DNA of 64,000 nt from Marsupella aquatica (Eukaryota > Plantae > Marchantiophyta), in assembly GCA_973895155.1 (NCBI GenBank), contig OZ316897.1:2619416-2683415 (forward strand), given 5' to 3'. Under the pieces are notes generated by a model. That model saw nothing but the letters and a program-made list of their open reading frames with translations, was not told the origin of the DNA and did not search any database. Positions 8,492 to 57,248 of this stretch are shown here, one piece after another. The position numbers and the translations under genes are program-made. Every line of letters begins with the position of its first letter. The first letter of the stretch is position 1.

Positions 8492-8736
8492 ACGTCCACG
8501 GGAACACACAAGAGCTTTACTGTACTCTAGACCGACCGGCCATACCAAGCATCCACAGCACAAGCTCTCCCTATCTCTCAACTAGCTCCGTAACAATGAG
8601 CCTAAGTTCCACTAGGGTCTGGCATCAGCCCTGGCTATATGCACACCAGCACTACGCTAACATTAGCTAAATCCTAACCCGAGTTAGACTAACTATGGTT
8701 AGCTCATGAGTCACAAGACTAGAGCAATATCTAACA
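8492..8736 (-). repeat. Truncated 5' LTR of copia copy 1
   Basis: Matches 5322-5566 and is joined directly to pol sequence. Confidence 0.9.
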
Positions 8737-36167: not shown

Positions 36168-39100
36168 GATTACTTTAGGGACATGTATTATACGTTCATC
36201 GTATGTGAACGTATGTTTTGTAATGACATGTTTTTTTTATATTGTTAATAATATGTTTCGAGCACTACTATATTTGGCGTTAATTTCATTGTGAATACTT
36301 TATTGTATTGTCTATAGAATGTGCGGCCTAGTCAAGATATGTTGCCAAGGAGGTTGAGAGCTACATATCAAGAAATGGGCTTGCCACAAGACGGGGAAAC
36401 ATCATCAGCAGATTTCTCATCAAGTGACAATGATAATGACAGTCCAGATGAAGGGGCACCTCGGACAGATTATGAGGTCATGCAAGACCAAGAGTCAGCC
36501 ATGGATGACTTCATGACAAATTGGTTTGGTGTAGACATTGATGGTGAAGGAGGTGTCCCACCCAATGAAGGAGACCCTCCACCAAATGTTGCACATGATC
36601 CAAGGCCTCAACGTACACCTGAAGGACAAAAACAATGGGAAGAAGTTGAGGCACATGCTAGAACACCTATTTATGGGGGTGCTCATTTGAATAGACTATC
36701 TGCCATCTTGGCATTGATGAATCTTCAGGCAAAACACAAGGCAAGCAATGCGCTACTATCGGATTTGTTTGCAATTTGCCATGATCTCTTGTTACCTAGT
36801 GAAAATGTGTTGCCAGGAACTTGGAAGGAGGCAAAGAGGGTTCTATCATCCATTGGCATGGAATACCATATCATTCATGCTTGTGTGAATGACTGCATTC
36901 TCTATCATGAGACCAATGCCAGCGCAACTGAGTGTCCAATTTGTCAAGAGCCTCGATATGAAACCAACATGTTGACCTCAAAGGTGTCTAGAAAAGCTGT
37001 TCGTTGGTTTCCTATTATTCCTCGATTGTTGCACATGTACCGATGTTCTGACTTGGCAGAATTGAGGGTATGGCATAAGACACATCGATCAGAGGCCGGT
37101 GTCATGCGGTTGCCAGTTGATTCCCCTGCTCACAAGCATGTGGAGTCACAATGGCTAGAATTTGCACGTGACCCTCATCATGTGAGGTTGGGGTTGGCAT
37201 CAGATGGGGTAAGCCCACACTCCCTTGGAGGGAAAGGGCGCCCTACTTCGGTTTGGCCGGTGGTTGTTATGAATTACAACCTTCCCCCATGGTTGTCCAT
37301 GAAAAAGGGATTCTTATTGCTATCATTGATTATCCCAGGTCCATCTAAGGTAAAAAACATGGACACCTACTTGGCGCTCTTGGTTGGGGAACTCCATAAA
37401 TTATGGGGGGGTGTATGGGCATATGATGGTCGGACAACTACAGGAGGGTTACCACGTGTCTTCCAATTGAAGGGAATCATTATGTGGACCATGCATGACT
37501 ATCCAGGTGAGTGGTATGGATTTGTATTTTTTTCATGTATTGGAGATCAAGTTTGTTTGGAAGGAAGTCCCTCTTTAATTCTATGTACATGAACTTTTCA
37601 ATTCCTTTGACTCTAATTGAGAATGTTATTTTGTGAGCACGGTTTGGGTTTGTTTTTGGGTTCCAAACTCAAGGGTACAAGGCATGCTCCACTTGTGGTC
37701 CAAGCCTTCACGATATGGCCAAGTACTCAAAATGGCTGCACAAGATAATCTACCTTGGTCATACCAAGTTTCTTCCACTTGGGCATCACATGAGGTCTGA
37801 CCCCCTTTTGTTTTCAGACTTTGACATGATCAATGGTGATGAGCGTGAGATACCTGACCGCACAATATTTTCGTATTGGAAATCCATAGCTGATAGGGTG
37901 GCAGACCCTGAAGATGCCATGGGATTTGATGGTAGTGGATTGACAAGGTGGGGTATACTGGCCACTTTGCCCTATTGGCCTGAGTTGAAGATTCATCACT
38001 TGTTAGACCCCATGCATATAGAGGGAAATGTTGGGAAGGCTTTGATCAAGCACTTTTATGGGGAAAAGAACATTAATTTTAGGGAGGCATGCCAGGATCT
38101 AGAACGACATCCAGATGTATGGATAACAGTTGATGAATCCACAGGGATGGAACATCGTCCTTCAGCTCCATGGGTTTTGAGTGTTGGTGAAAGAAGAGAG
38201 TTTCGACAACGCATAGGGTAGATGCGGTTTCCTACAGGCTATGGTGCCAATCTACGTAAGGCTTTTGGGATGGAGGACAGTCATAAATGGCCAATGTATC
38301 TCAAGACACATGACTATCATCGTTTACTACAACATATACTTCCTGTGGCAATCATAGGTTTGGGGAGTGAAGAAGTGCAAGACGCTCTTTGGTCACTGGG
38401 CACTTTGTTGAGATGGATATGCTCAAAGAAAATATATGAAGAAGAGATACCACGGATGGAGGTATTGGCAGCAGAGGTGGTATGCAAGTTGGAGAAGGCC
38501 CTCCCTCCTTCCTTCTTTGATTGTCAGGTGCATCTTCTCGTTCATCTTGTGAGGGAGGTTGCCATTGCCGGTCCGGTGCATTGTAGGTGGATGTATTGGC
38601 TGGAAAGGTATATGGCCGTGTTAAAGGCTTATGTACGGAACCGTGCACAAGTGGAGGGGAGCATGGCAACTGGATACTTGGCAGCTGAGAGTATGTTTTA
38701 TTGTAGTAACATCTTAGCTACCATTGATCCTAGTTTTCCACGCACTTGGATGGAAGAGAGGGAAGTGGAGGAGGACCGTTTAACAGGTGCAAAAAAAACA
38801 CGCTTACTAACCGCAGTGGAGTTGACACAGGTTAGTACTTTCATGTTGAGTAACAGCAATGTGATAGAAGATTGGAGAGAGTTTTATGAGGATGCAAAGA
38901 GGGAGAGTCGTCGCCCAAGGATCTTTCCAAAGTTCCTTGAGTATATGAAGGAGAAAGTACTTCAGTTGGATGCTATGGTGGCCCAAGGTGAGAATGTATC
39001 ACATTTTCCAGATATGACTCCTGAGGTTCGAACAATTGTTCATGGTCCTTTAAGACTTGTTCAAACCAGAACAGCAATGTGGACACAAGGGAGGCATTTC

Positions 39101-39586
39101 AGGATTTCTGACCTTGATGAGAAGAGGGGAAGAACTTTTGATTGTGGAGTTCATGGGCAGTTCATGCAAGATTCACAAAGTAGCCGTCATGACACTAATG
39201 TGATCAGAGATGTGGTGCCTCACTATGGGAAGATTGAGGAGATCTTGATCATATCCTATGATGCCGATTCCAAATTTGAAGAGTATGTCTTCAAGTGTAA
39301 GTGGTTCAAAATTCACCTGGTTGGTGATAATCGCACGGTACTTCTTGATGAGTGTGGGTTTACTCGACTGAAGACATCAGCAACTAGCTTTCAACCATCT
39401 CATTGGCAAACATCTGAACCATTTACATTCCCAAGTCACCTTGAGCAGTGTTTCTATATTCCGTACCCACCAGACCTAGAGTGGTCAGTTGTTATACCGT
39501 ATGTGCCACGGTCCCGTTCCATTATCTCGAAAAAACCTGACGTTATTATTGTGTCAAATGGAGGCGAGGATGAGGACCAGGTTTGA
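35006..39586 (+). pseudogene. CACTA transposase TnpD (exons 35006-35239, 36318-37506, 37641-39586), disrupted
   Basis: CGCKKC...H N-terminal transposase-associated motif, IHACVNDCILY, LGLASDG, NLPPW, MHDYPG, LDPMHIEGN, LKTHDYH, GPVHCRWMY..ER, FKCKW; acceptor CAG mutated to CAC at 37640 and TAG at 38219. Confidence 0.88.
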
Positions 39587-40574: not shown

Positions 40575-41384
40575 GTCTGGATACAAGGAGGTCTACAACT
40601 GGGTTTGTATACACTCTTGGAGGAGGATGTATCAGTTGGAAATCTACCTTGCAGAAGTGCATATCTCAGTCTACTACAGAAGCAGAGTATGTTGCAGCAG
40701 CAGAAGCAGCAAAGGAAGCAATTTGGTTGGAACACGATTTCGGACCGAACGAGAACTATTTCCTCTAAACGAGAAGTGTATTTTCATTTTCCGCCGAATC
40801 TCGCAAAATCAAAAGTTTTTTTCATCAAAAATGCATTTTTGGGGAAATAATGTAAAATTTTCGTATCGGAGTTCGGATTGAAACAGCAAATTTAATAATG
40901 ATCAAAACCAATGAAATTCATGCTAACAAACATTCATATTATCAAGGAACAATTAGATCCGAAAAACTTTATCCTCGACCTCATATTCACGCTCTCCAAA
41001 GATATATGAAAGGTCTTATCTATAAATCCATATCCACGTTTCGAGCCAAGTGCGATAACTGTATCGGACTCCGGATTTGAGCCACGAAAACTCCGACCCA
41101 ATCTCAGGTTTCTCAGTTTTTGGATATTTACCAAAAATATTTTACATCACAGTCGATAAGAATAATTACTGCACGGTTCGTCAAACTTACCTTGCAGTTA
41201 CCTCCGCAATTGACCAGTTACCTCCGCAAGTGACCATAGTCAACATGCCATTCTTTCAACAGCAATGCGCAGTCCGATAAAATTATCGCGAAAACTACGG
41301 GCGACAAAAATACTAGTCGACAATACTAAGATCCTTCGGTTCATCGGTTAAATTTCAAAATTCCTATCCATATGAAGAAAACTC

Positions 41385-41570
41385 TTCGCAATACCAACAT
41401 CAGATAAATTTATCGCTTCAATTTCAAAATTGCAACTTCCATATGAAGGAACCACTTTTGCAATACCAACATCAGATAAATTTATCGCTTCAATTTCAAA
41501 TTGCAACTTCCATATGAAGGAACCACTTTTGCAATACCAACATCAGATAAATTTATCGCTTCAATTTCAA
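41385..41570. repeat. Tandem repeat of 71-72 bp, each unit carrying AGATAAATTTATCG
   Basis: gcaataccaacatcagataaatttatcgcttcaatttcaaa three times. Confidence 0.85.
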
Positions 41571-41677
41571 AACTATATAATTTTGCCACGATGCACGTGT
41601 GAGAATGAAATTGGAAATCCAAGAAATATACCCTTTTCTGCTATTTTGTCGTTTAGGGTGACAGCCAATCAAAAGTG

Positions 41678-41713
41678 GACACGTGGGCCAACCCCTCAAC
41701 AGACACTATAAAA
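41678..41713 (+). promoter_or_regulatory. Putative Pol II promoter of the transposase (CACGTG G-box plus TATAAAA)
   Basis: gacacgtggg at about 41678 and TATAAAA at 41707, about 150 bp upstream of ATG 41858. Confidence 0.45.
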
Positions 41714-41857
41714 GGGCCACCGCCGATAAGTTTTTGGCGTCATTATCGAGAGTAGAGTTTTGGGAGTTGTGTTCTTGGAGCAACATTCTGTCCGTTGAGC
41801 CTTTCGTTTTCCCTGATTGTGAGAGGAATGCAAAGCCCCATAGTGTCTCGGATAGCC

Positions 41858-44800
41858 ATGTCTCAATCAGACACAGATTCACCTTCCAGTTCAGTTGAAT
41901 CCTCTCCTAATCTTGTCGCTCGCTGTTTGCCAAGTTGCATACTTAAAGCTCTACCTCTCTCACAGCAAATAGTGCCCAAAATCTCTGACTCAGATTCTGA
42001 TGCAAGTTCTGGTCCTGAGCCCAGTGCTTACTATGTGTCGCCTAGTAAACCTGAGAAACGTTGTCTCTTGAGCGTTCCATCGCCAAGAAATGAGAAACTT
42101 TCAATCCCAGGTTTAGGTCCGAGACGTCGCTTCAGGCCATCCATCCCGGGTTATGGAGAGGGTATCCGGCGACCGATATGCGTATCGCAGTCGGCATTCA
42201 AGTCGCCACATTCAACACAAGTTCAACGACGGATCTTTCAGTCTCTGGGTGAGGATCGGGACACAGAAATACAAAGACCGATACAACGATCGGTCTTTGC
42301 ATTGCCTGGACTGGATGTGCGAGCAAGCGAGGGAATCGGACTGCAAAGTCCAGACTCGGCCCTTTCTCGAATGGTCCGTGGGAATCGTGGTGAACAAGTG
42401 CTCAATTTTCCAGCAGCTCGCGGAGTTGTTGGGACTGCACGTGCGAATCCATAATCTCCAAGTTCTCAAGGGCGGACTATTGGTTCCAGGCTCCAAGTAT
42501 CGAGGAGAGGTCTTAGTGGCGTTCGGGTTATGTATAGAGAGCCACGGAGTCCAATTGTGTTTTCAGATGAGTCGAGTGCATCGGAGGACGAAGATGAGGA
42601 AGGAGATAGAGAATCCGATATAATAGCACAAGTTGTGTCTGAATGTTTAGAAGGAGCTGTCGAAGAGAATAGCTATAGTCGTCTATTCAGTGCCCCTCTA
42701 AATGCGTCAAGGAGATCTATAGAGGATGGTAGCTCAGCAGAGAGTGATGCATCTATTTGCGAGGCACCTGAAGGACCCGAAAATGCCAATGTTATGAACG
42801 GATTTCAGGTTGTAGAGAAGTCAAATGAGCCTAGTAAAAAAGATAGGGACCGAATTACTAGGAAAGACAATGTGATAAATGACAAATTGAATAGAAACAA
42901 AATGAGAGAAATTCATAAGTATTCGTGTTGTGATAATTACTGTCTGCGGAATTTGGGTCTGCTAGCCGTGACGAAACAATGCACTTATTACTATGGGCTA
43001 TCCTACCCAGAGAAGAACGTCCTTCTAAGAGGATGTGTGAAGGGTGGGCATGCTAGTGCAAGTGGTTACTCAGTTAGCGGTAGATCCTTTTGTCGAAGTG
43101 GTTTTAAGAAATTATTTTCACTAGGAAATAATCGTCTCCAAAAAATCTCGCAGAACATGTTTTTTCGGATACAGATTGGTACAGTTTGTCGAGAAAAATC
43201 ACCCGCACATCTTGGTCTCGTCCAATGGCTGGATGATTTTTTTTCCACAAATGTCGAGAGTCTCCCCAACAAGGATATCTTTCATTTACCTGACAATTGG
43301 AAAAAAACAAAAGTTTTTGATGCCTTCCAGTCTGAAACTCTAATGCGCCAAGAACAAGGCATGACATATTCGTGGTTTGTTCACATTTGGAACAAGGAGT
43401 TTCCTCGTGTGCGCATCCCCAAAAGGAGCCATTTCTCCACCTGCGCCCCTTGTACTGAATTCAAAGCTCTCCGTGACAAGGCAACACTCAAAGCAGAAAA
43501 GAGTAAGTTTCTAAACCTGTGTGTTACTCCCGATAATTTTATCGGGTTGAGTATTCATGTGCTTCTTCTTTGGCCATGTGAGTGAATATATCGTTTGAAC
43601 AGTTTGAATACTAAACCTGATAAATTTATCGCTGTCACAGTTTTTCATTATGGTCTTGTGTTTGAATACTGAACCCGATAAATTTATCGTTGTCAGGGTT
43701 TATCATTACGGTCTCGTGTTTGAATACTGAACCCGATAAATTTATCGCTGTCAGGGTTCAACATTGCGGTTATCATGTTTTGTCCTAAACATTTTTATTA
43801 TTGTAGGAAAATTCTCAACATTGCTAAACGAGCATCGGAAGGCACAAGCAATCGAGAGGGAGAAGTTAGCAAAGCATCGGAGCAAATGTTACAAGAATCC
43901 GGAGAAATATTTGGGCATCTGTATTGATGGAATGGATCAAAAGAAGATAGAGTTACCTCATTTCATTCGATGTCCGAAGAATATGGATGAAAAGTATTTC
44001 ATCCCCGTACACGTAGTGGGTTGTTTGATCTTTAACAAACAATTAAGTTCAAATGTTTTTTTGAACTATCCTAATATTCACAATGATAGCAACCTGACCA
44101 TCCACGTTATCCAGCATATTCTGAATACTTGGGAAGGTCTGCTCCCTCCAGTGCTTTACCTCCAGCTTGATAACACAGCTCGGGAAAACAAGAATAAATA
44201 TCTTATGGCATATTTAAATATGTTGGTGGAGATAGGTGTTTTCCAGAAAATAAAGGTTGGTTTCCTATTGGTGGGGCACACCCATGATCAAATTGATCAA
44301 ATGTTTAGCAAGTTTTCTTCAAAATTGAACAAGCGGAAAGCTTTCTGGTTGGACACTCTTTCAGCAATCATAGAGGAATCCTACAATCCTACGGCAAAGA
44401 TATTTTTCATCGACGAGGTTGCCGATTTCAAGAAATTTGTGTCAGACAAGGATCAAGCAAATGACAAGGATATGGATGGTCAGGTTCTACGTACTCTCCA
44501 CGGCATAAGTGCTCAAAAACAATTTCGGATTACTAGAGTACTCGAAGATGGAAGTGCTCGATCCGTATTCCATGCCAAACATCTTTCAACGACAATCGAT
44601 TGGGGGGAGACGGTGGATTTTTTTCGGTACATTCCATCATCTAGAATGTGGGTCGCACCACAAATGGCATTGAAGTCGGCCACGGGAGTGACAGGAGACA
44701 ATGAAGAGCAAGAGAATGATGTTGAGGAACAAGATGAGCGGGCGGCTCAAAGTTATTTGTCAACTCTTCAAAAATATCGAAGAGCAATTGAAGATGGATT

Positions 44801-45416
44801 CAATTACTTTGACGACGCAGATCGTCTATGGTGGGGTCATTTTTTTGACAAACAAAAAGAAGTGATTCAGCATCACCTGAAACCTGGACAATGGAGTTTT
44901 GATTGGAGTTGACCCAAGGTAAACGTACAGAGAGAACTTCAGAGTAATCCTACGGAAGCAGCAATGGAACCTAGCTTGGTTGATAAAGTAGCGGGTGTGA
45001 GGACAGTCATGTATTCCGGAAGTCGAAGAAAAGTCACAGAAATTGGAGACTTCAAGGATCTAGAGGTGAATACTAAATTTGCAATGATATGTGTAGCAGC
45101 CCATCAGGATCCCAAGGGAAGACCATTCTGGATGGCAAAAGTGACTGAGATTCTCACAAGAATTAACGACATCCCGGAGCGGATTAAAATCACTTGGTAT
45201 GCAATGGATTCGGAGGAAGAGTCTGCAATTGAAGGCAGATATTATCCGGAGAAAGAGGCTTCGTCTAGCAAAGTACTGGAGGATGAATTGTCCCTATCAG
45301 AAACTGCCATTTATGCGTATAACTTTGCGTTATTGGCAAATAGTACTCTCCCTATACAAACAAGATGAATCATTCAAAATGCAATGGAGACTGTAGTCGT
45401 TGATAGTCGAAGCTAG
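41858..45416 (+). pseudogene. DDD-type transposase (Sola-like / DUF7869-like); exons 41858-43502 and 43807-45416; in-frame stops at 42452, 44910 and 45366
   Basis: Cys clusters CCDNYC and FSTCAPC, candidate catalytic IDGMDQ, QLDNTARENKN, LVGHTHDQIDQMFS; phase-1 GT-AG intron 43503-43806 joins the frames; the ORF pieces are all co-frame. Confidence 0.8.
43600..43760. repeat. 58-bp tandem repeat in the transposase intron, each unit carrying the CGATAAATTTATCG palindrome
   Basis: tttgaatactgaacccgataaatttatcg...gtca three times. Confidence 0.85.
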
Positions 45417-45931
45417 TTTCAGGTTTAAGTTATAATGGTTATCGTTCCCATGAATATGTACAGTGGTTATCGTTCTGGGACTATGTACTCCGCAACTATA
45501 ATGATATCTTTTTTTTTTAATAATTGCAATGACAAACCAGTTAGAGAATACAATGTTGTCCGATAAGATTATCGACAACACCGCGACAGTCCGATATATG
45601 CAAAGTCCGATAAATTTATCGCATTAATAAATGTGACAAAGGTTCTTCCTCATGGAATATAGAAGTCGATAAATTTATCGACAACTTCATTGGTGATTGA
45701 CATTATCCTAACGAGCACATGCAACTAATCTAATAACATGTCATTGAGATCATCCTCATTTGGTGTTCTGGGAGGCTCTTCCTCAGTTTCTTCTTGTTCC
45801 TCTTCGGTCTCCTTCACGACCTCAACTACGTAAGTTGATGTCCCGAGTACACCCAATTGGCCTGCAATTGGTGGTTGAATCTCATGACCTTAAACGCCGT
45901 GCCCTTCAATCTGGGATTCTTCATATAAATT

Positions 45932-48900
45932 CTAGTTTGACTCCAGAATCATGATCCGGGATTTTACAAAACCAATCTGCGCAGAACTCTTATCAACAGC
46001 ACAACCCTGGCGAGAATTGAGGAGCGTAGCAGCTAATGTCGATCCGGTTCCACAACAAAGATCAATAACCCAATCCTCTTTCTCAGAGAAATGGGAAACA
46101 AACCAAGCCCCTAAACCAACAGGCTTTTGATATGGGTTCACAACAAATCCCAACGGATCAACGGACTTCTTGGTTACACATGGAACCTTGATGATATTGA
46201 CGCGAGACTCATTCGGTTGGAAATTGTACATGTTCATGTTCCGAATGCCTTCCTCACTATAGAAACCTATCGACCAGTTCTCAAAACCCCACGCCAATCG
46301 AGCTCCAGCGGGACGCTCATGAATGTTAGTCTTCTCCCAGATTCCAGCCTCGACCCCACAGTTGCATACACTCTCCAGTGCAGACATCACCATATGCGTT
46401 TGTTGTAGTGAATGGATCACAACAAACCTCCACTGCTTAGCGGTCGTCATCTTTGAGAAACTTGTCAACATGTCTAAAATGTCCTTTTCTATGAAGGCCA
46501 CTTCATCAAACTCCGAACCAGGAGCATTAAAACCATACGGAATATCCGCAACCGTAAGGGTGTAAGCCCTTGGCTGAACAAAAGAATCCAAAATTCGAAC
46601 ATCACCAACATGGAGATAGTAGGGAAAAGAATCCCCGTCTGCATTTTTCCATGTTTGTTCAAACGCTTCTGCTGTGCCCTCGCCTAAGGACCTCAGCTGA
46701 TTGTACTTATCGATTGCAGCAAGCACAAAATTCTTAAACACATAAGGGATTTCAGCTGAGGGAACAATAACCTCCCCCGCAGAATTATAAGTGACAGCCG
46801 GAACCACTTTGCTTTTCCTTTTTGAATTAATCTTCAGCTGTAAGAATGTCAGACACATCTATAGTTAGAATAGCGTGAGATGAATGCTAAAGCCGATAAA
46901 AATCTCGCGATGGAGCACGCTAGCCAATAGATGGAATCGCTTAGAAACCAACAAAGGAATGCTAAAGCCAATAAAAATCTCGCGATGGAGCACGCTAGCC
47001 AATAGATGGAATCGCTTAGAAACCAACAAAGGAATGCTAAAGCCGATAAAAATCTCGCGATGGAGCACGCTAGCTGATAGATGCAATCGCTTAGAAACCA
47101 ACAAAGGAATGCTAAAGCCGATAAAAATCTCGCGATAGAGCATGCTGTGAGAGGAATGCTTACCGCGTCACTCAATTTCTCCGCCCATATGCCAAGGACC
47201 GAGACATCTGTTTCGTTGGGAAACATTTCTCTGCATGTTGCCCAATCTGGCTGACCAGATATCTGCAAAAATAGTTTCTTCACCTTGGCAAGCTTTTTCA
47301 ACTTCTCACCTTCCTTATGCATTTGATCCAAAGTGATCACCTTCCCGATAACCCTATTCAAGAGACGCTTGACATGCTCTTTATTTGACAGTCCTTGGAG
47401 ACCTCGAAATGAATTTAAGTTGAGGTCACCAGCAAGTTTATTCATTTTAATCTCCCTTACCGTCAAAGGTTTTACCTTTCCCTTTGCGTTCGTCGTTGCC
47501 ACAATTTTTTTGGGTTGTCCTAAGACAATACCTTTCTCCCACATCTGGAAAATCTTCTCCTGAAGATCCCAAATTTCACCTGTTTAGAAAGCAATTTGGA
47601 AAGCCGAATCATGTTTGGCCATGGAGTCACGAACTCCCGGCGTGTACTCCATCATGCATTCTTGACAACATGCTTCGCGAACATCTTTAGTCGAGCCCAC
47701 ACCCATTTCAAGGAAAATATTGTGACAAGCGCGAACTTGGTCAATTTTAGTCATGTTCTTCCGATACTCCTGGTCATAGTTATACTGGAAGCCTAACTTT
47801 CGGACCTCGAATCTCGTAAGCCCAGCGTAAACCCAAGCTTCCAGCTCACCATATATTTGCTTCCCGTACATTTTAAACAACTCGGACTTTGCCCGAGCAC
47901 CATGATTCCCTCCAATAATTCTATACTTCCATACCCTTGACTTCAGGATGTCCCAATCTGCGTTTGTGGGACAATCCTTCGGATCCACACACAGCACGAA
48001 CGGGGCACTGAAGTTGGTGGGGTTTTTCATGAGAAGTATCTTGATATTTTCCACATGCAATCTATCCACTGGTCTAATCAAAGTTGACAAATCCCCCTCC
48101 TCATCAAATATGAGATTGTCGACATGCAGAAGCACAGTTGTCCTTTGCACCCTTCGTTGCATCAGAAGACTGAGCTCTGCCTTGATCGCGTCCGTCTCAT
48201 ACATCGAAAGAGCCGTCTCCTCCTCCTGATCAGCCTACAAAAGCGTTGCAAATTCAATTAAGGAAAGAAACTGCAAGATTTTTATCGGAGTTCGCATTTG
48301 TTCAACATAACTCCACAATCCGCAATTCAGGAAATAAACAGCGAGATTTTTATAGGATTTCATGTTTGTTAAACAGTACAACGACATAGTACTTACCAAT
48401 GGCGCCGCAGGAACCGCGACTGGAACTGATGGAATTGACGGAGCTCTATCTACTTCTGCAGCCACCGTCTCAGTCCAGCCAGTCCTCTTCCTCTTTGTGC
48501 TAAGTCCAGAACCAGATGGCCCAGATCCCTCGGATCCTTTACTTTCGCTTGGTTTAACGGATGGTCCTCGACGGTTGCCCCGGCCTCTCCCACTACCGCC
48601 AATTTCCTGGCTCTTCTTCCCACCGTCAGAGGTTCCCGCGGCATCTCCCCTGCCGCTACCTCTCCCTTTCCCTTTTCCACTTCCCGAAACTCGACCAGAA
48701 GTTGTAGGTTCGTCCATGTCAATATGTGTAGAGGATTGCAATGGTTCTTTCCGCCCCGATATTTTATCGGCATTAGAACCACCGCTGCCACTTGAACCTG
48801 GTTTCTTGAAAACAATTTTGTGGACAGGTTTGAACTCTTCACCCACAAGTCTCTTGTACTCTGCGTTCACCCTTGGAAGCATGATGGCATCACAATCTTG

Positions 48901-49365
48901 CACATACTGGCCGATCCAAGCCGAACCCATAACATTCATCTCTCTTGCTGCCCGAACATCGGCAACAAGGGGATCTTCTGGATAACTGTCCATCGATTTC
49001 TCATCAAAGTTATCGAGAGTAACAATGAGAGATGTGAAACCCTTGCGCCCACACATTGTCAAGAAACTAAGGCCCTCTGTCAACACTTTTCCCTCCCCGT
49101 GGCCAACCATGAACTCGATGACGGCAACAGCAATGACAGGGCCATACGAAATATTAACCTTCGCCGATTTTTGCAACTAGACCCAAAGGATTGGGGTAGC
49201 ACAGTCTTCGAAACCCGTGGACTGTAATCTGGCGTCACGGAAGTACCATGACTTCTTGATACACTTGACCTCTTCACAAATGTCTTCACTTGTCCAAATT
49301 GCATTGGTGAGGCTTGTCATGAGACTTTCTGCCTCAGCAGATCCACTCTTTCCACTAGCAACCAT
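45932..49365 (-). pseudogene. ParB-like domain + beta-class N6A/N4C DNA methyltransferase fusion; exons 49365-48397, 48234-47164, 46837-45932 (~980 codons); in-frame stops at 49177 and 47584
   Basis: ParB/Srx-like LIRPVDRLHVENIK...YRIIGGNHGARA; MTase motif IV ADIPYG precedes motif X YQKP and motif I VIDLCCGTGSTLAA; both introns GT-AG, phase 0. Confidence 0.78.
46882..47143. repeat. 75-bp tandem repeat (~3.5 copies) filling intron 2 of the ParB-MTase gene
   Basis: Units start at 46882, 46957, 47032, 47107 and contain the palindrome variant CGATAAAAATCTCG. Confidence 0.9.
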
Positions 49366-49664
49366 GGAAAAGTCTGCAAATAAACAAATTCCAATGCAAA
49401 GAGCGATAAAATTATCGCCGCCAATCTCACAACACATGTGGACATGACATCTCATCACACAAGGACAAAGAGACCGATAAAATTATCGCAAAAGTGAGCC
49501 TTCTTTAAATTGACGGCCGAGTGTACAGGTCGAAGAATCAGCTACGGAACCCTAAATCCAAAACCTTAACCCCTAAACCTAAATCCTAATCATAGTTGAA
49601 CCTCGCCAGAGTGAAGCGTTCGATCCGCTTCTTGGGCCATTGGGGAATATGAGTGACGCGATGA

Positions 49665-50285
49665 TCATAAGCCCACAGCTTCACTAGTCTCAGGATTCAC
49701 TACTGCTACTGAATACCGGCGTGACGGAATGTCACAACAAGCATTTGTGCAGCATGGACAGATCTCACCATTGGCAAGGACATTCGTCCACAGGCAACTT
49801 ACATAGATCAAGTTAAAGAGCCCACAGACCGGCTGGGGGGGGAGTTGACGAATCTTGTATGAATATAGTTTCCCACCAGTGTCAATAAAAAACTCGGTGG
49901 CAAGAGGATTGTCCAGCTCGTCAATCACATCCTGAATCTCATCGAATGCTCTACGTCTGTTGTCGACATAGAATTCTGGCTCATAAGCAGGATTGCCCTT
50001 CACAACATGACAGCAGTGGAGTATAAAACGTCTTACTGCACCGGTTTTCAGAAAGAGTAGGATAACTCTTCTAGAAAATCCAACATATCTATCCCACCGA
50101 ATATAAATTTCTCCCCCTACCTGATCTACGTAGAAGTGAAATGCGTTATGGTAAAACGGTTTTACTACCAGCCTGCATATCTTTAAAATTAGTGACTCAT
50201 CCAGCCTCCTTAGCTGGTCCAACATGGCTCCATTCCCCCATTCTGGAGGATCCAGGTAGGGTACAAAAATGCGTCGCTCGAGCAT
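49665..50285 (-). CDS. Orphan transposon cargo ORF (206 aa, Cys-rich C-terminus)
   Basis: Intact ATG-initiated ORF between palindrome clusters; no family recognised. Confidence 0.5.
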   Translation of the reverse strand: MLERRIFVPYLDPPEWGNGAMLDQLRRLDESLILKICRLVVKPFYHNAFHFYVDQVGGEIYIRWDRYVGFSRRVILLFLKTGAVRRFILHCCHVVKGNPAYEPEFYVDNRRRAFDEIQDVIDELDNPLATEFFIDTGGKLYSYKIRQLPPQPVCGLFNLIYVSCLWTNVLANGEICPCCTNACCDIPSRRYSVAVVNPETSEAVGL

Positions 50286-50577
50286 GGCCTGATCACCGAA
50301 TAGAAATCAGGAATAAATTTTGGAGAACATACTAATTACAATTCTACAAGTTTCATCCAACTTTATAGTACCTTGTATAACGGGCTGTGAAGCCAATGCA
50401 CTTGTCAGCTAATCGTCCAAAGAGGCGCAAAAAAATACACTCTGGACCACACAACCCGAAGTCAGGGGAGGCAGAGTCAATTATATTCAAAGTGTTTCTT
50501 TACAAGCACCCAAAATCGACTAGAGGAATGAGGAGTGCGATAAATTTATCGGATGTTCGCAGCAATGCCTCATCCAC

Positions 50578-51107
50578 TCAGACTCGTCCATGCCATGCAA
50601 GAATTGTCCGCTTCCCGCTTTCTCCAAGATTTATCCAAACTCTACGAAACTGATCTAACTGCTCATACGAAAAGCACCCAAGCATATCTATGGGAGGGAG
50701 GAAATGAGTTTCCTCTCGGAAGACCCTAGCAATATGTAGGTTTGAGAGAAGGTCGGCATTAGGAATGCTTGCAAGCATTTTGTTTATGTCATTGATCTCA
50801 CGAACTGCATATTTCAATAGCGCCCAAAATCATGTACCAACAACAAGATGGTTCCATTTCTTCGAGGTGGCTCCAAGACAAATGATTGTTCTCATTCGAG
50901 TCAGTCGTTCTTCTGGTAGAAGTTTTAGGTCAAGGCCAAGGTGCTCATCTTGTGTGCAAGACAAGGCTAGGAGGGGCCAAATGTGAGAAGTCCATTCAAC
51001 AAACTTCCGCATTCCACACCGGGCACTTTTCCTCGAATATATTTCCTACGCTTGTGGGCTAAAACGGATCCCATCTTTGCAATGATTAGATTCTCCGATG
51101 CAGCCAT
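50578..51107 (-). pseudogene. Disrupted orphan cargo ORF
   Basis: ORFs 51012-50830 and 50817-50578 are co-frame across one TGA; the upstream ATG at 51107 is out of frame. Confidence 0.35.
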
Positions 51108-51301
51108 GAAGCAGAGCTACCAAAACCACCAATAAAAATACCTTCAATCACCAGGTGTAACCGAACACATCCACAGTACCAACCCTGCACGACAGTTTAA
51201 CGATTAGGACTCGTGACGTCTTATATTCGTTGCGCAAGGGTAGGACTTGTTTATTTAAATATGTCCTTCCAAGACGCGCCTCAATGAAAAGGTCGAAACA
51301 G

Positions 51302-51631
51302 TCATCGTGAAAGGTTCACCCAAGGGTCTTCGTTCCAAATCTTACAACAGAAGTGAGCCTGTTTGTGGTACTTGTTGTCAAGACGACGACAACAATAGTT
51401 ACAAGAAAACTCCAAAGAATGTAAACACGCCGTTAACATCAACCTCGAATGAATTGGAACTCCTACATCATTCATTCCGCAAAATTCAATGCGGAGAGGA
51501 TTCTGCCTATCTCTAGGATCAGTACCACCCATCCACAATACTCCTATACCGATGGGGAGAACTTTGAGTCGCATGAGTCTCTTGTACAACCGGCGTGCAC
51601 GTTTGACACAATTTTCAAGGAAGACAGCCAT
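51302..51631 (-). CDS. Orphan cargo ORF (109 aa, Cys/His-rich)
   Basis: ATG-initiated ORF inside the TIR element; no family recognised. Confidence 0.35.
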   Translation of the reverse strand: MAVFLENCVKRARRLYKRLMRLKVLPIGIGVLWMGGTDPRDRQNPLRIEFCGMNDVGVPIHSRLMLTACLHSLEFSCNYCCRRLDNKYHKQAHFCCKIWNEDPWVNLSR

Positions 51632-52627
51632 TTGTCACAATACCTGTTGTCCACGGAGTGCAATCGACCTTCCGTTGTGCCTCCTAAACCCGGCAACACT
51701 GCGACATCAGAGATGAAGATGAGTCTCCAAACAAAACAAAGGAAAATGATTCTCAGAGGAGGATGCGATAAGTTTATCACACTCCGCATTCGAATTGAAA
51801 ATATGACTTCCTCAGACACCTAACCCCTGAATTCAATCTTTCACAAAAATGACAACTCCGATAAATTTATCGGATTCTCAATTACTCCTCTTTCCATGAA
51901 AGGAATGAAGACTCTGATAAATTTATCGGAATGAAGGCAACACCTCTCTAAACACTAGATCAAATGATTGCAACAGAGGAATGCAAAATGCGATAAATTT
52001 ATCGCAGTCCGCTCGGATCTGGACATTTTACACTAAATGACTAGTTAGTCTTACATGGAGAACTTGAACAGGAATGGCTGTTCCGATAAATTTATCGGGA
52101 TTTCGGTAGAAAGAGTCGAATCGCTTGGGAGGAATGTAAGACTTGATGGGAGTTTGGTATTCGCTCTCAGTCAGGAGATATTTGCTCTGGCGAAAGCAAA
52201 CGTTTTATGGGCAACCGCTCCTCTTTATATAGGAGACGCTCTAAACCATGGTTAATTTCCCCTTAACCATGGTTAAGTTTCCCCTTTACCTGGGTTAGTG
52301 CGTGGTCGTTCCTGGATTACGCGGTTCGGACCAAGTTACTCGTAGTTTGGACTTTTTCACTGACGGAATGTAAAACCCGATGCACGTATCGCTCCCTGCA
52401 TTCCCACGGCGATGCAATGGAGGAATGTGGCGTTTCGGAGAGTTTTTTCCAATTTTATCGGTCATTGCATTGCCTTAGAAAAAAAATGGGATCGGGCTAA
52501 ACGAGAACTCCGACACACTTCTCGGTCGGTCCGAAATCGTGTTTTGGACAAGTTGATCGCGGAGATGGATTTAGAGCATGGAAAAATGACTCTAAACTGT
52601 GATAGTCAGAGTGCTCTTCACTCTCAC

Positions 52628-55305: not shown

Positions 55306-56090
55306 CAGAGAGGTTGAGAAAACTCACGCTCGCGCAGCGAGGTACTACCTTAAGACGTGTCCAGATACTGAAGAGTTGGGGCATTGTTTCCATGTATCTT
55401 CAGCATTCGACGAGGCTCAAAGTTTGCGCATTCTATCGAGCAGAACCCCGCCCATGAGAATGTGGACATCGATTCGTTAGCAGTCGACGAGGCTCAAAAG
55501 TTTGTGCTCTCTCGAGCATAATCCGGCCCATGAGAGGGTGGACATCGATCGATTCGTGCAAGTAATCGGCATTCTAGCTTTCAGAATTCGGATACAGTGT
55601 CTTCAGCTTTCAGAAATCGGATATAGTGTCTTCAGAGGATTTAGTTTTAGTAGGTCTCCGGGTACGTTGGCCTTTGGTGGGAGGCGAATCTGATACCTAC
55701 GAGTCTGTGCATGTGAGTCAAGTATTCAAACAACGTGACTGAATAGTTTGGGTGAACATCTCAGTAACCTATTTTATGATAGCCCTTGATTGGATAATTT
55801 CGCTTGAATAGTGACGTGATTAATATTCCTCATGTGGTTCTTTCCTCTTGATGCTCAGTGGAGTCGATCTGCCCATACGACATCAGTTCTGTGATCTTAG
55901 AGTTCGTACAACATTGATTCTGGGCTCTTCTACTTCGTTCGACATCATTTCTGGGCTCTTCTACTTCGTTCGACATCATTTCTGTGCTCTGTAACTTCGA
56001 CTCCGGTGCAGACGATAAGCGGCTGTCCAACGAACGACAGATTGGAGAAGCTAAGAGCATCTAGCTGCAAGCGAATTCCCCTTGGCTGAG

Positions 56091-57248
56091 ATGGATACCG
56101 AAGCAAATGCAGCTCCTCAGCGAAACTTAGCAAAAGGTGTTGACGAGCATCCTACAATCCCTGCCCGTGGTGTGCGTCGTAAGAAGAGTGGAGCCAACTG
56201 GAAGAGCCCTGGTGACTACGAGCATCCGGCAAGTCTGGGCAGTGTCATGCATGGTGAGAGCAGTGCAGCAACACCAAAGAGGCCCGTAATTCACAAGCCT
56301 GTGCGTCGTGAGGACAGTGGAGCCAGTGGGGAGAGTATTTCACCGAAACCTGCTGCACCTCGATGTAATCCGCCGGGCATGAGAATCCGAGGAGCAAGAC
56401 AGATGCGAGGACAGATGGCACCCTCCTCTTTGAACAAAGGGAAGAAAGTTGACAAGCCCAAGGTCGACCGCAAGAAGGGCCGTCCCAACGGAGGAAAAAT
56501 GATAGACGTCGTCGCTGTAGAGAAGGAACTCCAGAGCGAAGCGGATATCGAGGTGAAGGTGAAGTATATCCTGGAGCAGTTCAGCGTATGCTGGGAAAGG
56601 TACAACGAGGAATGGGCGCGAGCTGGAAACCGGGCCGGACGCAAGGGCGTAAAGCGGGATCCAAACCGGGCCGACCTCAAGGCTATGGCGGAGCTCAACC
56701 AGTTACGCCAGCACGTCAATGGGGAGTGTGGCGTGTACGGGGACGTTCCGGGTGTTGCGGTGGGCGATACTTACCGCTACTTGGCAGAGGCATTCCTAAT
56801 CTCCCTCCATAGGAAGGCCCGAGCAGGCATCGACTTCGTCACAGATAAAGATCCGAGATTCACGGACAGACATGGAAAGTTAATTTCTATAGCCTTGAGC
56901 GTGGTCATTTCTAAACATACCCGGTACAATGACAAGGAGGATGGAGACACGATATGGTACAAGGGTGAGGGTGGCAACTGGAGCGGTGGCCAAGAAGGAG
57001 GATGGAAACACGATCAGAAACTGGAGAATGGGAATTTGGCCCTCGTGAACTGCCATCGGAACAGCCACTCGGTTCGTGTAATACGAGGCTCCAAAGCCCC
57101 CTCCAACCGTAGTCCGGCTGACAAAATCTACGAGTACCTTGGCTTGTACGATGTGAAGGATTACAAATATGAACGTGCAGGGTCGAGCGACGCCAAAGGC
57201 TTTACATTCATGTTAGTTAAAAAGATTTCTGAAGATGTGGCTAGATAA
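56091..57248 (+). CDS. SRA/YDG-domain protein (SUVH-like SRA, no SET domain), intronless
   Basis: GDVPGVAVGDTY, LHRKARAGIDF, SVVIS..Y.DKEDGDTIWYKGEGG, DQKLENGNLAL, VRVIRG, YEYLGLY (YDG changed to YLG). Confidence 0.85.
   Translation: MDTEANAAPQRNLAKGVDEHPTIPARGVRRKKSGANWKSPGDYEHPASLGSVMHGESSAATPKRPVIHKPVRREDSGASGESISPKPAAPRCNPPGMRIRGARQMRGQMAPSSLNKGKKVDKPKVDRKKGRPNGGKMIDVVAVEKELQSEADIEVKVKYILEQFSVCWERYNEEWARAGNRAGRKGVKRDPNRADLKAMAELNQLRQHVNGECGVYGDVPGVAVGDTYRYLAEAFLISLHRKARAGIDFVTDKDPRFTDRHGKLISIALSVVISKHTRYNDKEDGDTIWYKGEGGNWSGGQEGGWKHDQKLENGNLALVNCHRNSHSVRVIRGSKAPSNRSPADKIYEYLGLYDVKDYKYERAGSSDAKGFTFMLVKKISEDVAR

Follow-up and report, generated by a model that had tools for sequence, protein, structure and literature searches.

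The DNA analysed here, called the window, is a stretch of 64,000 nucleotides from Marsupella aquatica (Marchantiophyta; contig OZ316897.1, positions 2,619,416–2,683,415 of the forward strand). It contains a DNA transposon of 11,813 bp, which starts at position 40731 and stops at position 52543 of the window. The transposon carries a transposase gene and, opposite to it, an accessory gene with a ParB-like block and a putative amino-methyltransferase (methylase) block, and its non-coding DNA is filled with copies of a palindromic site. Comparison with related elements supports the accessory gene as a family-wide part of this transposon lineage and not a chance capture.

Structure of the element

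The inverted ends matched at 24 of their first 25 nucleotides and were flanked by two copies of TTGG (Table 1). The element is a clean insertion into the RNase H region of a copia element, with a 4-bp duplication: the copia frame was open again once the transposon and one TTGG were taken out. The first-pass annotation, made from the letters of the window, had described a sharply bounded 11.8-kb element that splits a copia RNase H, has inverted ends of 25 bp and is flanked by duplicated TTGG, which the ends and the restored frame bear out. It had also assigned a DDD transposase, and the second exon of the transposase gene matched Pfam PF25273 (DUF7869) with an E-value of 4.3e-50. Candidate acidic residues were located, by eye only, in the stretches DGMDQ, LQLDN and HTHDQIDQ. 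No Pfam domain was assigned to the large N-terminal exon, and a literature search for "DUF7869" returned nothing. Sola transposons reportedly produce target-site duplications of 4 bp, and both the length of the TTGG duplication and the acidic triad, as judged by eye, fit this superfamily. The element is a copy of an autonomous, Sola1-like DNA transposon of the cut-and-paste kind, whose transposase belongs to DUF7869.

The accessory gene lies on the minus strand, convergent with the transposase gene, and is made of three conserved coding blocks (N-terminal, ParB-like and methylase). A predicted intron joins the ParB-like and methylase blocks in frame, and distant homologues of the ParB-like block carry PF01555 in the same annotated polypeptide, including the 1825-residue protein GBG86584.1 of Chara braunii. 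The three-exon ParB-like/amino-methyltransferase gene of the first-pass annotation stood as regards its convergent orientation, its ParB fold and its methylase motifs, but its exon limits had to be revised. The break at 47586–47584 corresponded to an in-frame TAA and not to an intron, a conserved N-terminal exon (49347–48805) belongs to the gene as well, and the methylase exon reaches approximately position 45830, past two stops. A 40-nucleotide intron at 47584–47544 was rejected, as the frame runs through the TAA and the relatives are open there. The N-terminal exon showed no match in Pfam or in the ESM Atlas. The same was true of a conserved open reading frame (ORF) located upstream of it (49665–50285), which may belong to the accessory gene as a further exon or be a third gene.

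Table 1. Features of the transposon in the window, from left to right (a dot indicates that no strand applies).
Feature	Position	Strand	Remarks
Left target-site duplication TTGG	40727..40730	.	Removed with the element to restore the copia frame
Left terminal inverted repeat	40731..40762	+	32 nt at 88%
Left subterminal cluster	41053..41737	.	7 palindrome sites, including a 3 x 71–72-bp tandem array
Transposase exon 1	41852..43513	+	48% over 564 aligned positions with the L001 ORF, one frame (tblastn); in-frame TAA 42452–42454
Predicted transposase intron	43514..43862	+	4 palindrome sites (3 x 58-bp array); several in-frame GT..AG pairs possible
Transposase exon 2, DUF7869 catalytic core	43863..45389	+	62% with the L001 ORF, one frame; in-frame TGA at 44910 and 45366
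Gap between the convergent genes	45390..45829	.	3 palindrome sites; identical site in the same gap of L011
Putative beta-class amino-methyltransferase exon	45830..46843	-	DIPY, NPYQKP, DLCCGTGS; in-frame stops 45934–45932 and 45892–45890
Predicted intron, GTAAGC (47163) ... TTCTTACAG (before 46837)	46838..47163	-	Splice consensus; 4 x 75-bp array of the variant site CGAGATTTTTATCG
ParB-like exon (ParB/Srx N-domain, then helical region resembling the ParB helix-turn-helix)	47119..48210	-	In-frame TAA 47586–47584
Gly/Ser-rich linker and predicted intron	48211..48804	-	Two degenerate palindrome sites; boundaries approximate
N-terminal exon, conserved	48805..49347	-	32–35% identical to equivalently placed ORFs of L001, L004 and L007; in-frame TAG 49179–49177
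Conserved ORF, upstream exon or third gene	49665..50285	-	206 residues; homologues at 47–66% identity in other assemblies, including L012
Right subterminal cluster	51766..52097	.	5 palindrome sites
Right terminal inverted repeat	52512..52543	-	Pairs with the left end
Right target-site duplication TTGG	52544..52547	.	Copy of the left TTGG

Judging by predicted structures, the second coding block is ParB-like by fold and not by sequence. The model of this exon had a mean predicted local distance difference test score (pLDDT) of 89, and the best 18 Foldseek matches were all ParB, Noc, KorB or PadC, with E-values down to 2e-5. With the VIA aligner, the model superposed on the N-domains of ParB, Noc and PadC bound to cytidine triphosphate (CTP) over 96–99 residues, with Z 10.5–11 and a root-mean-square deviation (rmsd) of 2.1–2.3 Å; sulfiredoxins reached Z 7–8. 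Structure prediction of the reconstructed protein had been proposed as a check in the first-pass annotation, and a ParB fold was indeed obtained (Z about 11). As a stop cuts the window exon in its helical region, the intact homologue from a relative, contig L001, was also folded (pLDDT 90.5). This model aligned over 184–192 residues with the N-domain plus the DNA-binding domain of ParB/Noc (Z 10.2–10.9, rmsd 8–9 Å), the high rmsd being probably due to a different orientation of the two domains. Residues 156–311 of the same model matched the DNA-binding domain of parS-bound Spo0J (4umk_B) with Z 5.5. The Pfam model HTH_ParB gave a weak, sub-threshold match (E 0.038). A tblastn search against phages returned no match for the ParB-like exon and, for the methylase exon, a single weak match in a Vibrio phage (26% identity).

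The motifs of the methylase exon are in the beta-class order, IV before I, with DIPY at residues 105–108, NPYQKP at 241–246 and DLCCGTGS at 266–273. PF01555 scored 23.7 bits on the window exon, below the cut-off of 26.7, and 34.8 bits on the intact L001 ORF, above the cut-off; this domain is on record for most relatives. Across 19 homologues, 53–72% identical to the window exon, the Asp, Pro, Tyr, Gly, Phe and Asn of ADIPYGFN were invariant (19/19), and so were NPYQKP and the G-x-G of motif I, whereas the Ile of motif IV was replaced by Val in three (DIPY/DVPY). Searched against the PDB, the family profile gave weak matches only, all of them to beta-class enzymes: the rotifer N4CMT (8s9m, E 0.02), M.RsrI and a Thermus methylase (E 0.02–0.05). 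From their sequences, the methylases of the related lineages look competent, and methylase activity on DNA is plausible. The product would more likely be N6-methyladenine (6mA) than N4-methylcytosine (4mC), because motif IV starts with Asp.

The palindrome CGATAAATTTATCG was present in the element in eight exact copies and in 20 copies when up to two mismatches were allowed, compared to 0.16 expected from shuffles, and was absent from the other 52 kb of the window. Up to three mismatches gave 24 sites in the element, none of them in an exon. The sites were located in both subterminal regions, in the transposase intron, in the gap between the two genes, and in the introns and upstream of the accessory gene, which agrees with the earlier description of one palindrome recurring in introns and intergenic gaps. 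Three tandem arrays (Table 1) each multiply one site. The site is composite, with the structure [GC]AAT[GA]-N7-CGATAAATTTATCG and approximately 24 copies: 14 of the 24 have the pentamer at a distance of exactly 12 bases upstream, and four have it mirrored 8 bases downstream. The decayed sites differed mainly by CG to TG or CA changes.

Relatives of the element and decay of the window copy

The relatives' contigs that were compared included the longest contigs, taken first, then seven from one Joint Genome Institute (JGI) metagenome and four from run assemblies; metagenome and run assemblies hold proteins 55–72% identical to the methylase exon. On the longest contigs the methylase gene converges on a DUF7869 transposase. 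The order N-terminal, ParB and methylase blocks, followed by transposase exon 2 and exon 1 in reverse orientation, was observed on every contig long enough, and ten contigs keep the gene order of the window as far as each of them reaches. The first-pass annotation had considered that the gene might be absent from other copies. The opposite was found, as the gene was kept in every relative's contig of sufficient length, and the transposase, the ParB-methylase gene and the palindromes, whose joint occurrence it had proposed to look for, were indeed found together, the sites being lineage-specific.

The methylase exon was open in all eight relatives checked. The ratio of non-synonymous to synonymous substitution rates (dN/dS) for the methylase was 0.07 between L008 and L006 and 0.05 between L004 and L002, and the ParB block gave 0.09 for the latter pair. 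In all other pairs the synonymous sites were saturated, with proportions of differences of approximately 0.8 at synonymous sites (pS) and 0.13–0.30 at non-synonymous sites (pN). The ParB and methylase parts are under strong purifying selection. A one-off capture or a nested insertion of the methylase gene was rejected in view of the conserved order, of this selection, and of the presence in L001 of a terminus homologous to that of the window element (L001 positions 8579–8610). In L002, a 93-bp internal duplication was observed in the ParB exon around a run of N (positions 541–686), which could be a genuine repeat within the ParB N-domain or could stem from the assembly.

Each relative has a CGA-N8-TCG site of its own, 14 bp long, with which its non-coding DNA is filled. 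The inner bases differ and a GAATG-type flank is often kept, CGA...TCG being the sole part of the site common to all lineages. The site reads CGATAAATTTATCG in the window and in L011, CGATACCGGTATCG in L001, CGAGAC[CG]GGTATCG in L003, L005 and L009, CGAGACCGGTCTCG in L006, CGAGACCAGTCTCG in L008, CGATCAAAACATCG in L002 and L013, and CGATCCAAACATCG in L004. L011, the nearest relative, comes from another sequencing run, and its methylase and transposase are 69% and 73% identical, respectively, to those of the window. It has exact copies of CGATAAATTTATCG in the intergenic gap, at the same places as in the window, in non-coding DNA that has otherwise diverged, and the intron variant of the window, CGAGATTTTTATCG, is found upstream of its methylase exon. 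The site types fall into clades of the methylase tree without conflict (11 rows; this is a description and not a test). Palindromes that change from lineage to lineage as a family trait would be expected of a self-recognition module. When seven ParB blocks whose sites are known were compared, variability was highest in the helical region that follows the ParB fold, which we consider as a lead only. A candidate reading as GATA-factor sites was rejected, as the relatives show GATC or GAGA in that place. In L006 and L007 (JGI metagenome Ga0066793), the site and its two flanks together make up a near-perfect palindrome of approximately 38 bp (GAATG-N7, the 14-bp core, N7-CATTC), unlike the window sites, where the flanking pentamer is mostly one-sided.

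The window copy has seven in-frame stops, three in the transposase gene and four in the accessory gene (Table 1), and for this reason encodes no working protein; an intact autonomous copy was rejected on the same grounds. No frameshift was found in its genes, indicating that it died by point mutation. At the TAA in positions 47586–47584, the relatives read Arg. The family is multi-copy in the DNA runs of two organisms, which made it possible to compare positions 45933 and 47586 between copies: other contigs of runs X1 and X2 showed the sense base in four of four cases, and in run X4 the sense base accounted for 9012 of 9135 and 3866 of 4194 depth units, respectively. The sense codons at these two positions in other family contigs are TGG and CAA. 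Of the 40 best-supported differences between the window copy and the family, 28 were T/A in the window and C/G in the family, compared to four in the reverse direction. This excess fits a decay of the deamination type, private to the window copy.

The observed/expected CpG ratio was 0.86 in the element, 0.79–0.94 in the relatives' contigs (L001–L009) and 0.60 in the remainder of the window; the family is either young or losing CpG more slowly than its surroundings. Transposons lie stacked in the insertion region. Just upstream of the copia element hit by the insertion, positions 36321–39586 (+) encode a transposase of the CACTA type (Pfam Transposase_21, DUF4218, DUF4216). An ORF located 3.5 kb downstream of the element (56082–57248, +) contains an SRA (SAD_SRA) domain, which in SUVH/VIM-type proteins serves to bind methyl-cytosine. 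Near the start of the window, an intronless ORF of 493 residues (686–2167, +) encodes a glutathione reductase, 90% identical to a protein of the same length from Calypogeia fissa and approximately 73% identical to Marchantia and Riccia proteins, which places the genome among the leafy liverworts or near them. The glutathione reductase gene of plants usually has many exons, and the single-exon copy may be a retrogene.

Proposed role of the accessory protein

We propose that a dimer of the accessory protein of intact copies binds the sites, with the ParB-type helical region making the contact, and that the methylase part would then place an amino-methyl mark, 6mA being favoured over 4mC, on the DNA of the element. 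The element would in this way mark itself, either to counter silencing by the host or to regulate its own genes or its transposition. The mode of action would be nearer to the dispersed palindromic operators of KorB of plasmid RK2 than to chromosome partition, and with a private site in each lineage, rival families would not be served by the system. We put the probability that the protein reads the sites and writes an amino-methyl mark, for anti-silencing or self-regulation, at roughly 0.5. A more detailed scenario is clearly more tentative, short of even odds: a ParB-derived protein that loads at the private 14-bp sites and writes 6mA (or 4mC) over its own copies would allow them to escape or tune silencing by 5-methylcytosine (5mC) and heterochromatin, site and protein diversifying together. 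Binding and methylation, as well as any clamp action of the ParB type, are inferences.

Several observations weigh against the proposal. The window copy is dead and does nothing itself. The clusters of sites near both ends also fit binding by the transposase. Motif IV reads D-I/V-P-Y and not the canonical [DNS]-P-P-[YFW]; its first Pro is replaced, with Asp, the second Pro and Tyr kept, and the Ile/Leu variant of this motif is, to our knowledge, confined to adenine methylases of rRNA, for example Erm and KsgA. The ParB-like exon gave no match to Pfam ParBc (E up to 0.1), and a profile of 39 family members found no ParB among the PDB sequences. The agreement of residues 156–311 of the L001 homologue with Spo0J was only moderate (Z 5.5, rmsd 4.5 Å). 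The CTP box of ParB, GERRxRA, reads GGNHGARA in the element, where G98 and H101 are nearly invariant across the family and the arginine pair is not kept. Because this CTP-binding pair is missing, clamp loading and spreading of the ParB type are not supported by the sequence. Finally, the presence of the ParB and methylase exons in one mRNA would follow from the homologues and the splice-site consensus, not from RNA; no RNA run containing this stretch was found.

The reader of the palindromes could be another protein of the element, or another part of the same protein. Subterminal repeats serve as transposase sites in CACTA, hAT and Mutator elements, and the palindromes might similarly be bound by the transposase to build the transposition complex, with the ParB-methylase acting without reading them. 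The sites are densest in the subterminal regions (seven on the left and five on the right), the divergence of the transposase between lineages parallels that of the sites, and its large N-terminal exon without an assigned domain would leave room for such a function. Yet sites are found throughout the introns of the two genes and in the gap between them, at a distance from the ends, and neither inverted end contains one. Moreover, a dimer-binding helical region of the ParB type is predicted to be encoded next door, and palindromes are the usual targets of ParB, KorB and Noc. We regard the transposase as an unlikely reader. An assignment of this role to the methylase domain seems still less probable. 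The domain would read the palindrome as a dimer and methylate a base in the CGA/TCG ends, the ParB/Srx part being used for nucleotide binding, nicking or bridging. In favour of this reading, no part of the site other than CGA...TCG is shared by all lineages, and several beta-class enzymes work as dimers on palindromes. ParB/Srx domains fused to phage methylases are, in addition, often annotated as nucleases (PMC4738411). However, the inner bases of the site differ between L006 and L008, whose methylase domains are 89% identical, and the variability, which is greatest in the helices following the ParB domain, points, weakly given seven sequences, to that region instead.

It is also conceivable that no mark is written at all. 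The accessory protein would then be a pseudo-methylase, a non-catalytic DNA-binding or chromatin adaptor, and the sites would be landing pads or host transcription-factor sites. The off-canon motif IV (DIPY) and the fact that the Pfam model aligns with the motif-I half only are in line with this idea. Asp, Pro, Tyr, Gly, Phe and Asn of motif IV, NPYQKP and G-x-G are nevertheless unchanged over the 19 homologues in spite of their divergence, with dN/dS of approximately 0.05–0.07, and such an invariance of the catalytic motifs together with the low dN/dS is more than a scaffold needs. We consider the adaptor improbable, to about the same degree as reading by the methylase domain, and retain a protein that reads the sites through its ParB-like part and marks the element as our proposal.

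Known systems of similar design

The accessory protein resembles bacterial ParB/Spo0J, Noc and KorB in its predicted architecture, with the same N-domain fold followed by a putative helical DNA-binding region, and in its putative targets, short palindromes in multiple copies. On RK2, the operators of KorB number about a dozen and are scattered around the plasmid. The bacterial proteins differ by their C-terminal dimerisation domain, where the accessory protein has a methylase, and by the arginine pair of GERR, not kept here. The VANC proteins of Arabidopsis VANDAL transposons, which are said to be anti-silencing proteins, are likewise encoded by the transposon and associated with short motifs in its own non-coding DNA, these motifs differing between related families. 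The likeness is one of design only, as VANC is an unrelated protein without a ParB or methylase domain, which causes a loss of 5mC and writes no mark. Prokaryote-type beta-class amino-methylases are also found in eukaryotic nuclei as MpDN4MT1a/b of Marchantia and N4CMT of bdelloid rotifers. These are host genes, unlike the element methylase with its DIPY motif, its location in a transposon and its ParB-like part, and no close relationship of the element methylase to MpDN4MT1 or to the rotifer N4CMT was detected. In MpDN4MT1a/b (Walker et al. 2021, bioRxiv 10.1101/2021.02.12.428880) the motif reads TSPPY, as is usual for N4C enzymes.

Closer counterparts exist in algae. Chlorophyte fusions of ParB, helix-turn-helix and methylase domains have been traced to phage ParB-terminase loci (PMC4738411). 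In the case of PAG2/PAG3, accessory genes of Plavaka elements in the red alga Bostrychia, a ParB-domain protein adjoins tandem inverted-repeat arrays, and binding and modification of its own element were proposed (Petroll et al. 2025, bioRxiv 10.1101/2025.02.11.637652). The window element similarly has a transposon-borne ParB-domain protein beside arrays of inverted repeats. In Bostrychia, by contrast, ParB is fused to a 2OG-dependent oxygenase, the N6A methylase is part of another protein with a SET domain, and the superfamily is Plavaka/CACTA-like. The nearest design is that of Sola1-1_Ec32 of Ectocarpus, described as a 21.5-kb Sola1 element with a gene on the opposite strand for a 1104-residue ParB plus N4C/N6A methylase protein (Dinatale et al. 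2025, PMC12477816). Its authors propose that the accessory protein binds and epigenetically modifies its own transposon. As far as the descriptions can be compared, both are large Sola1-type transposons with an accessory ParB and methylase gene opposite the transposase. Sola1-1_Ec32 belongs to a brown alga and not to a land plant, and the string "palindrom" is absent from the paper, whose passage on this element does not mention cognate sites.

The first-pass annotation had held this combination to be undescribed in a plant transposable element. No literature report linking ParB, transposons and Marchantia or other land plants was found, but the same design, with the same hypothesis, is published for algae. 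If the module works as proposed, transposons of early land plants would carry their own sequence-specific writer of a non-5mC mark, which would bear on the evasion of silencing by transposons and on the origin of eukaryotic 6mA or 4mC. The idea of self-marking is thus not new; new detail comes from the land-plant element, the composite site, the sites that change between lineages, the catalytic motif, which is conserved, and how strong the selection is. Compared to the algal elements, this family offers matched pairs of protein and site in one frame, with inner bases such as AATT, CCGG or an asymmetric type CGATC-AAAA-CATCG, with which the idea put forward for the algae becomes directly testable.

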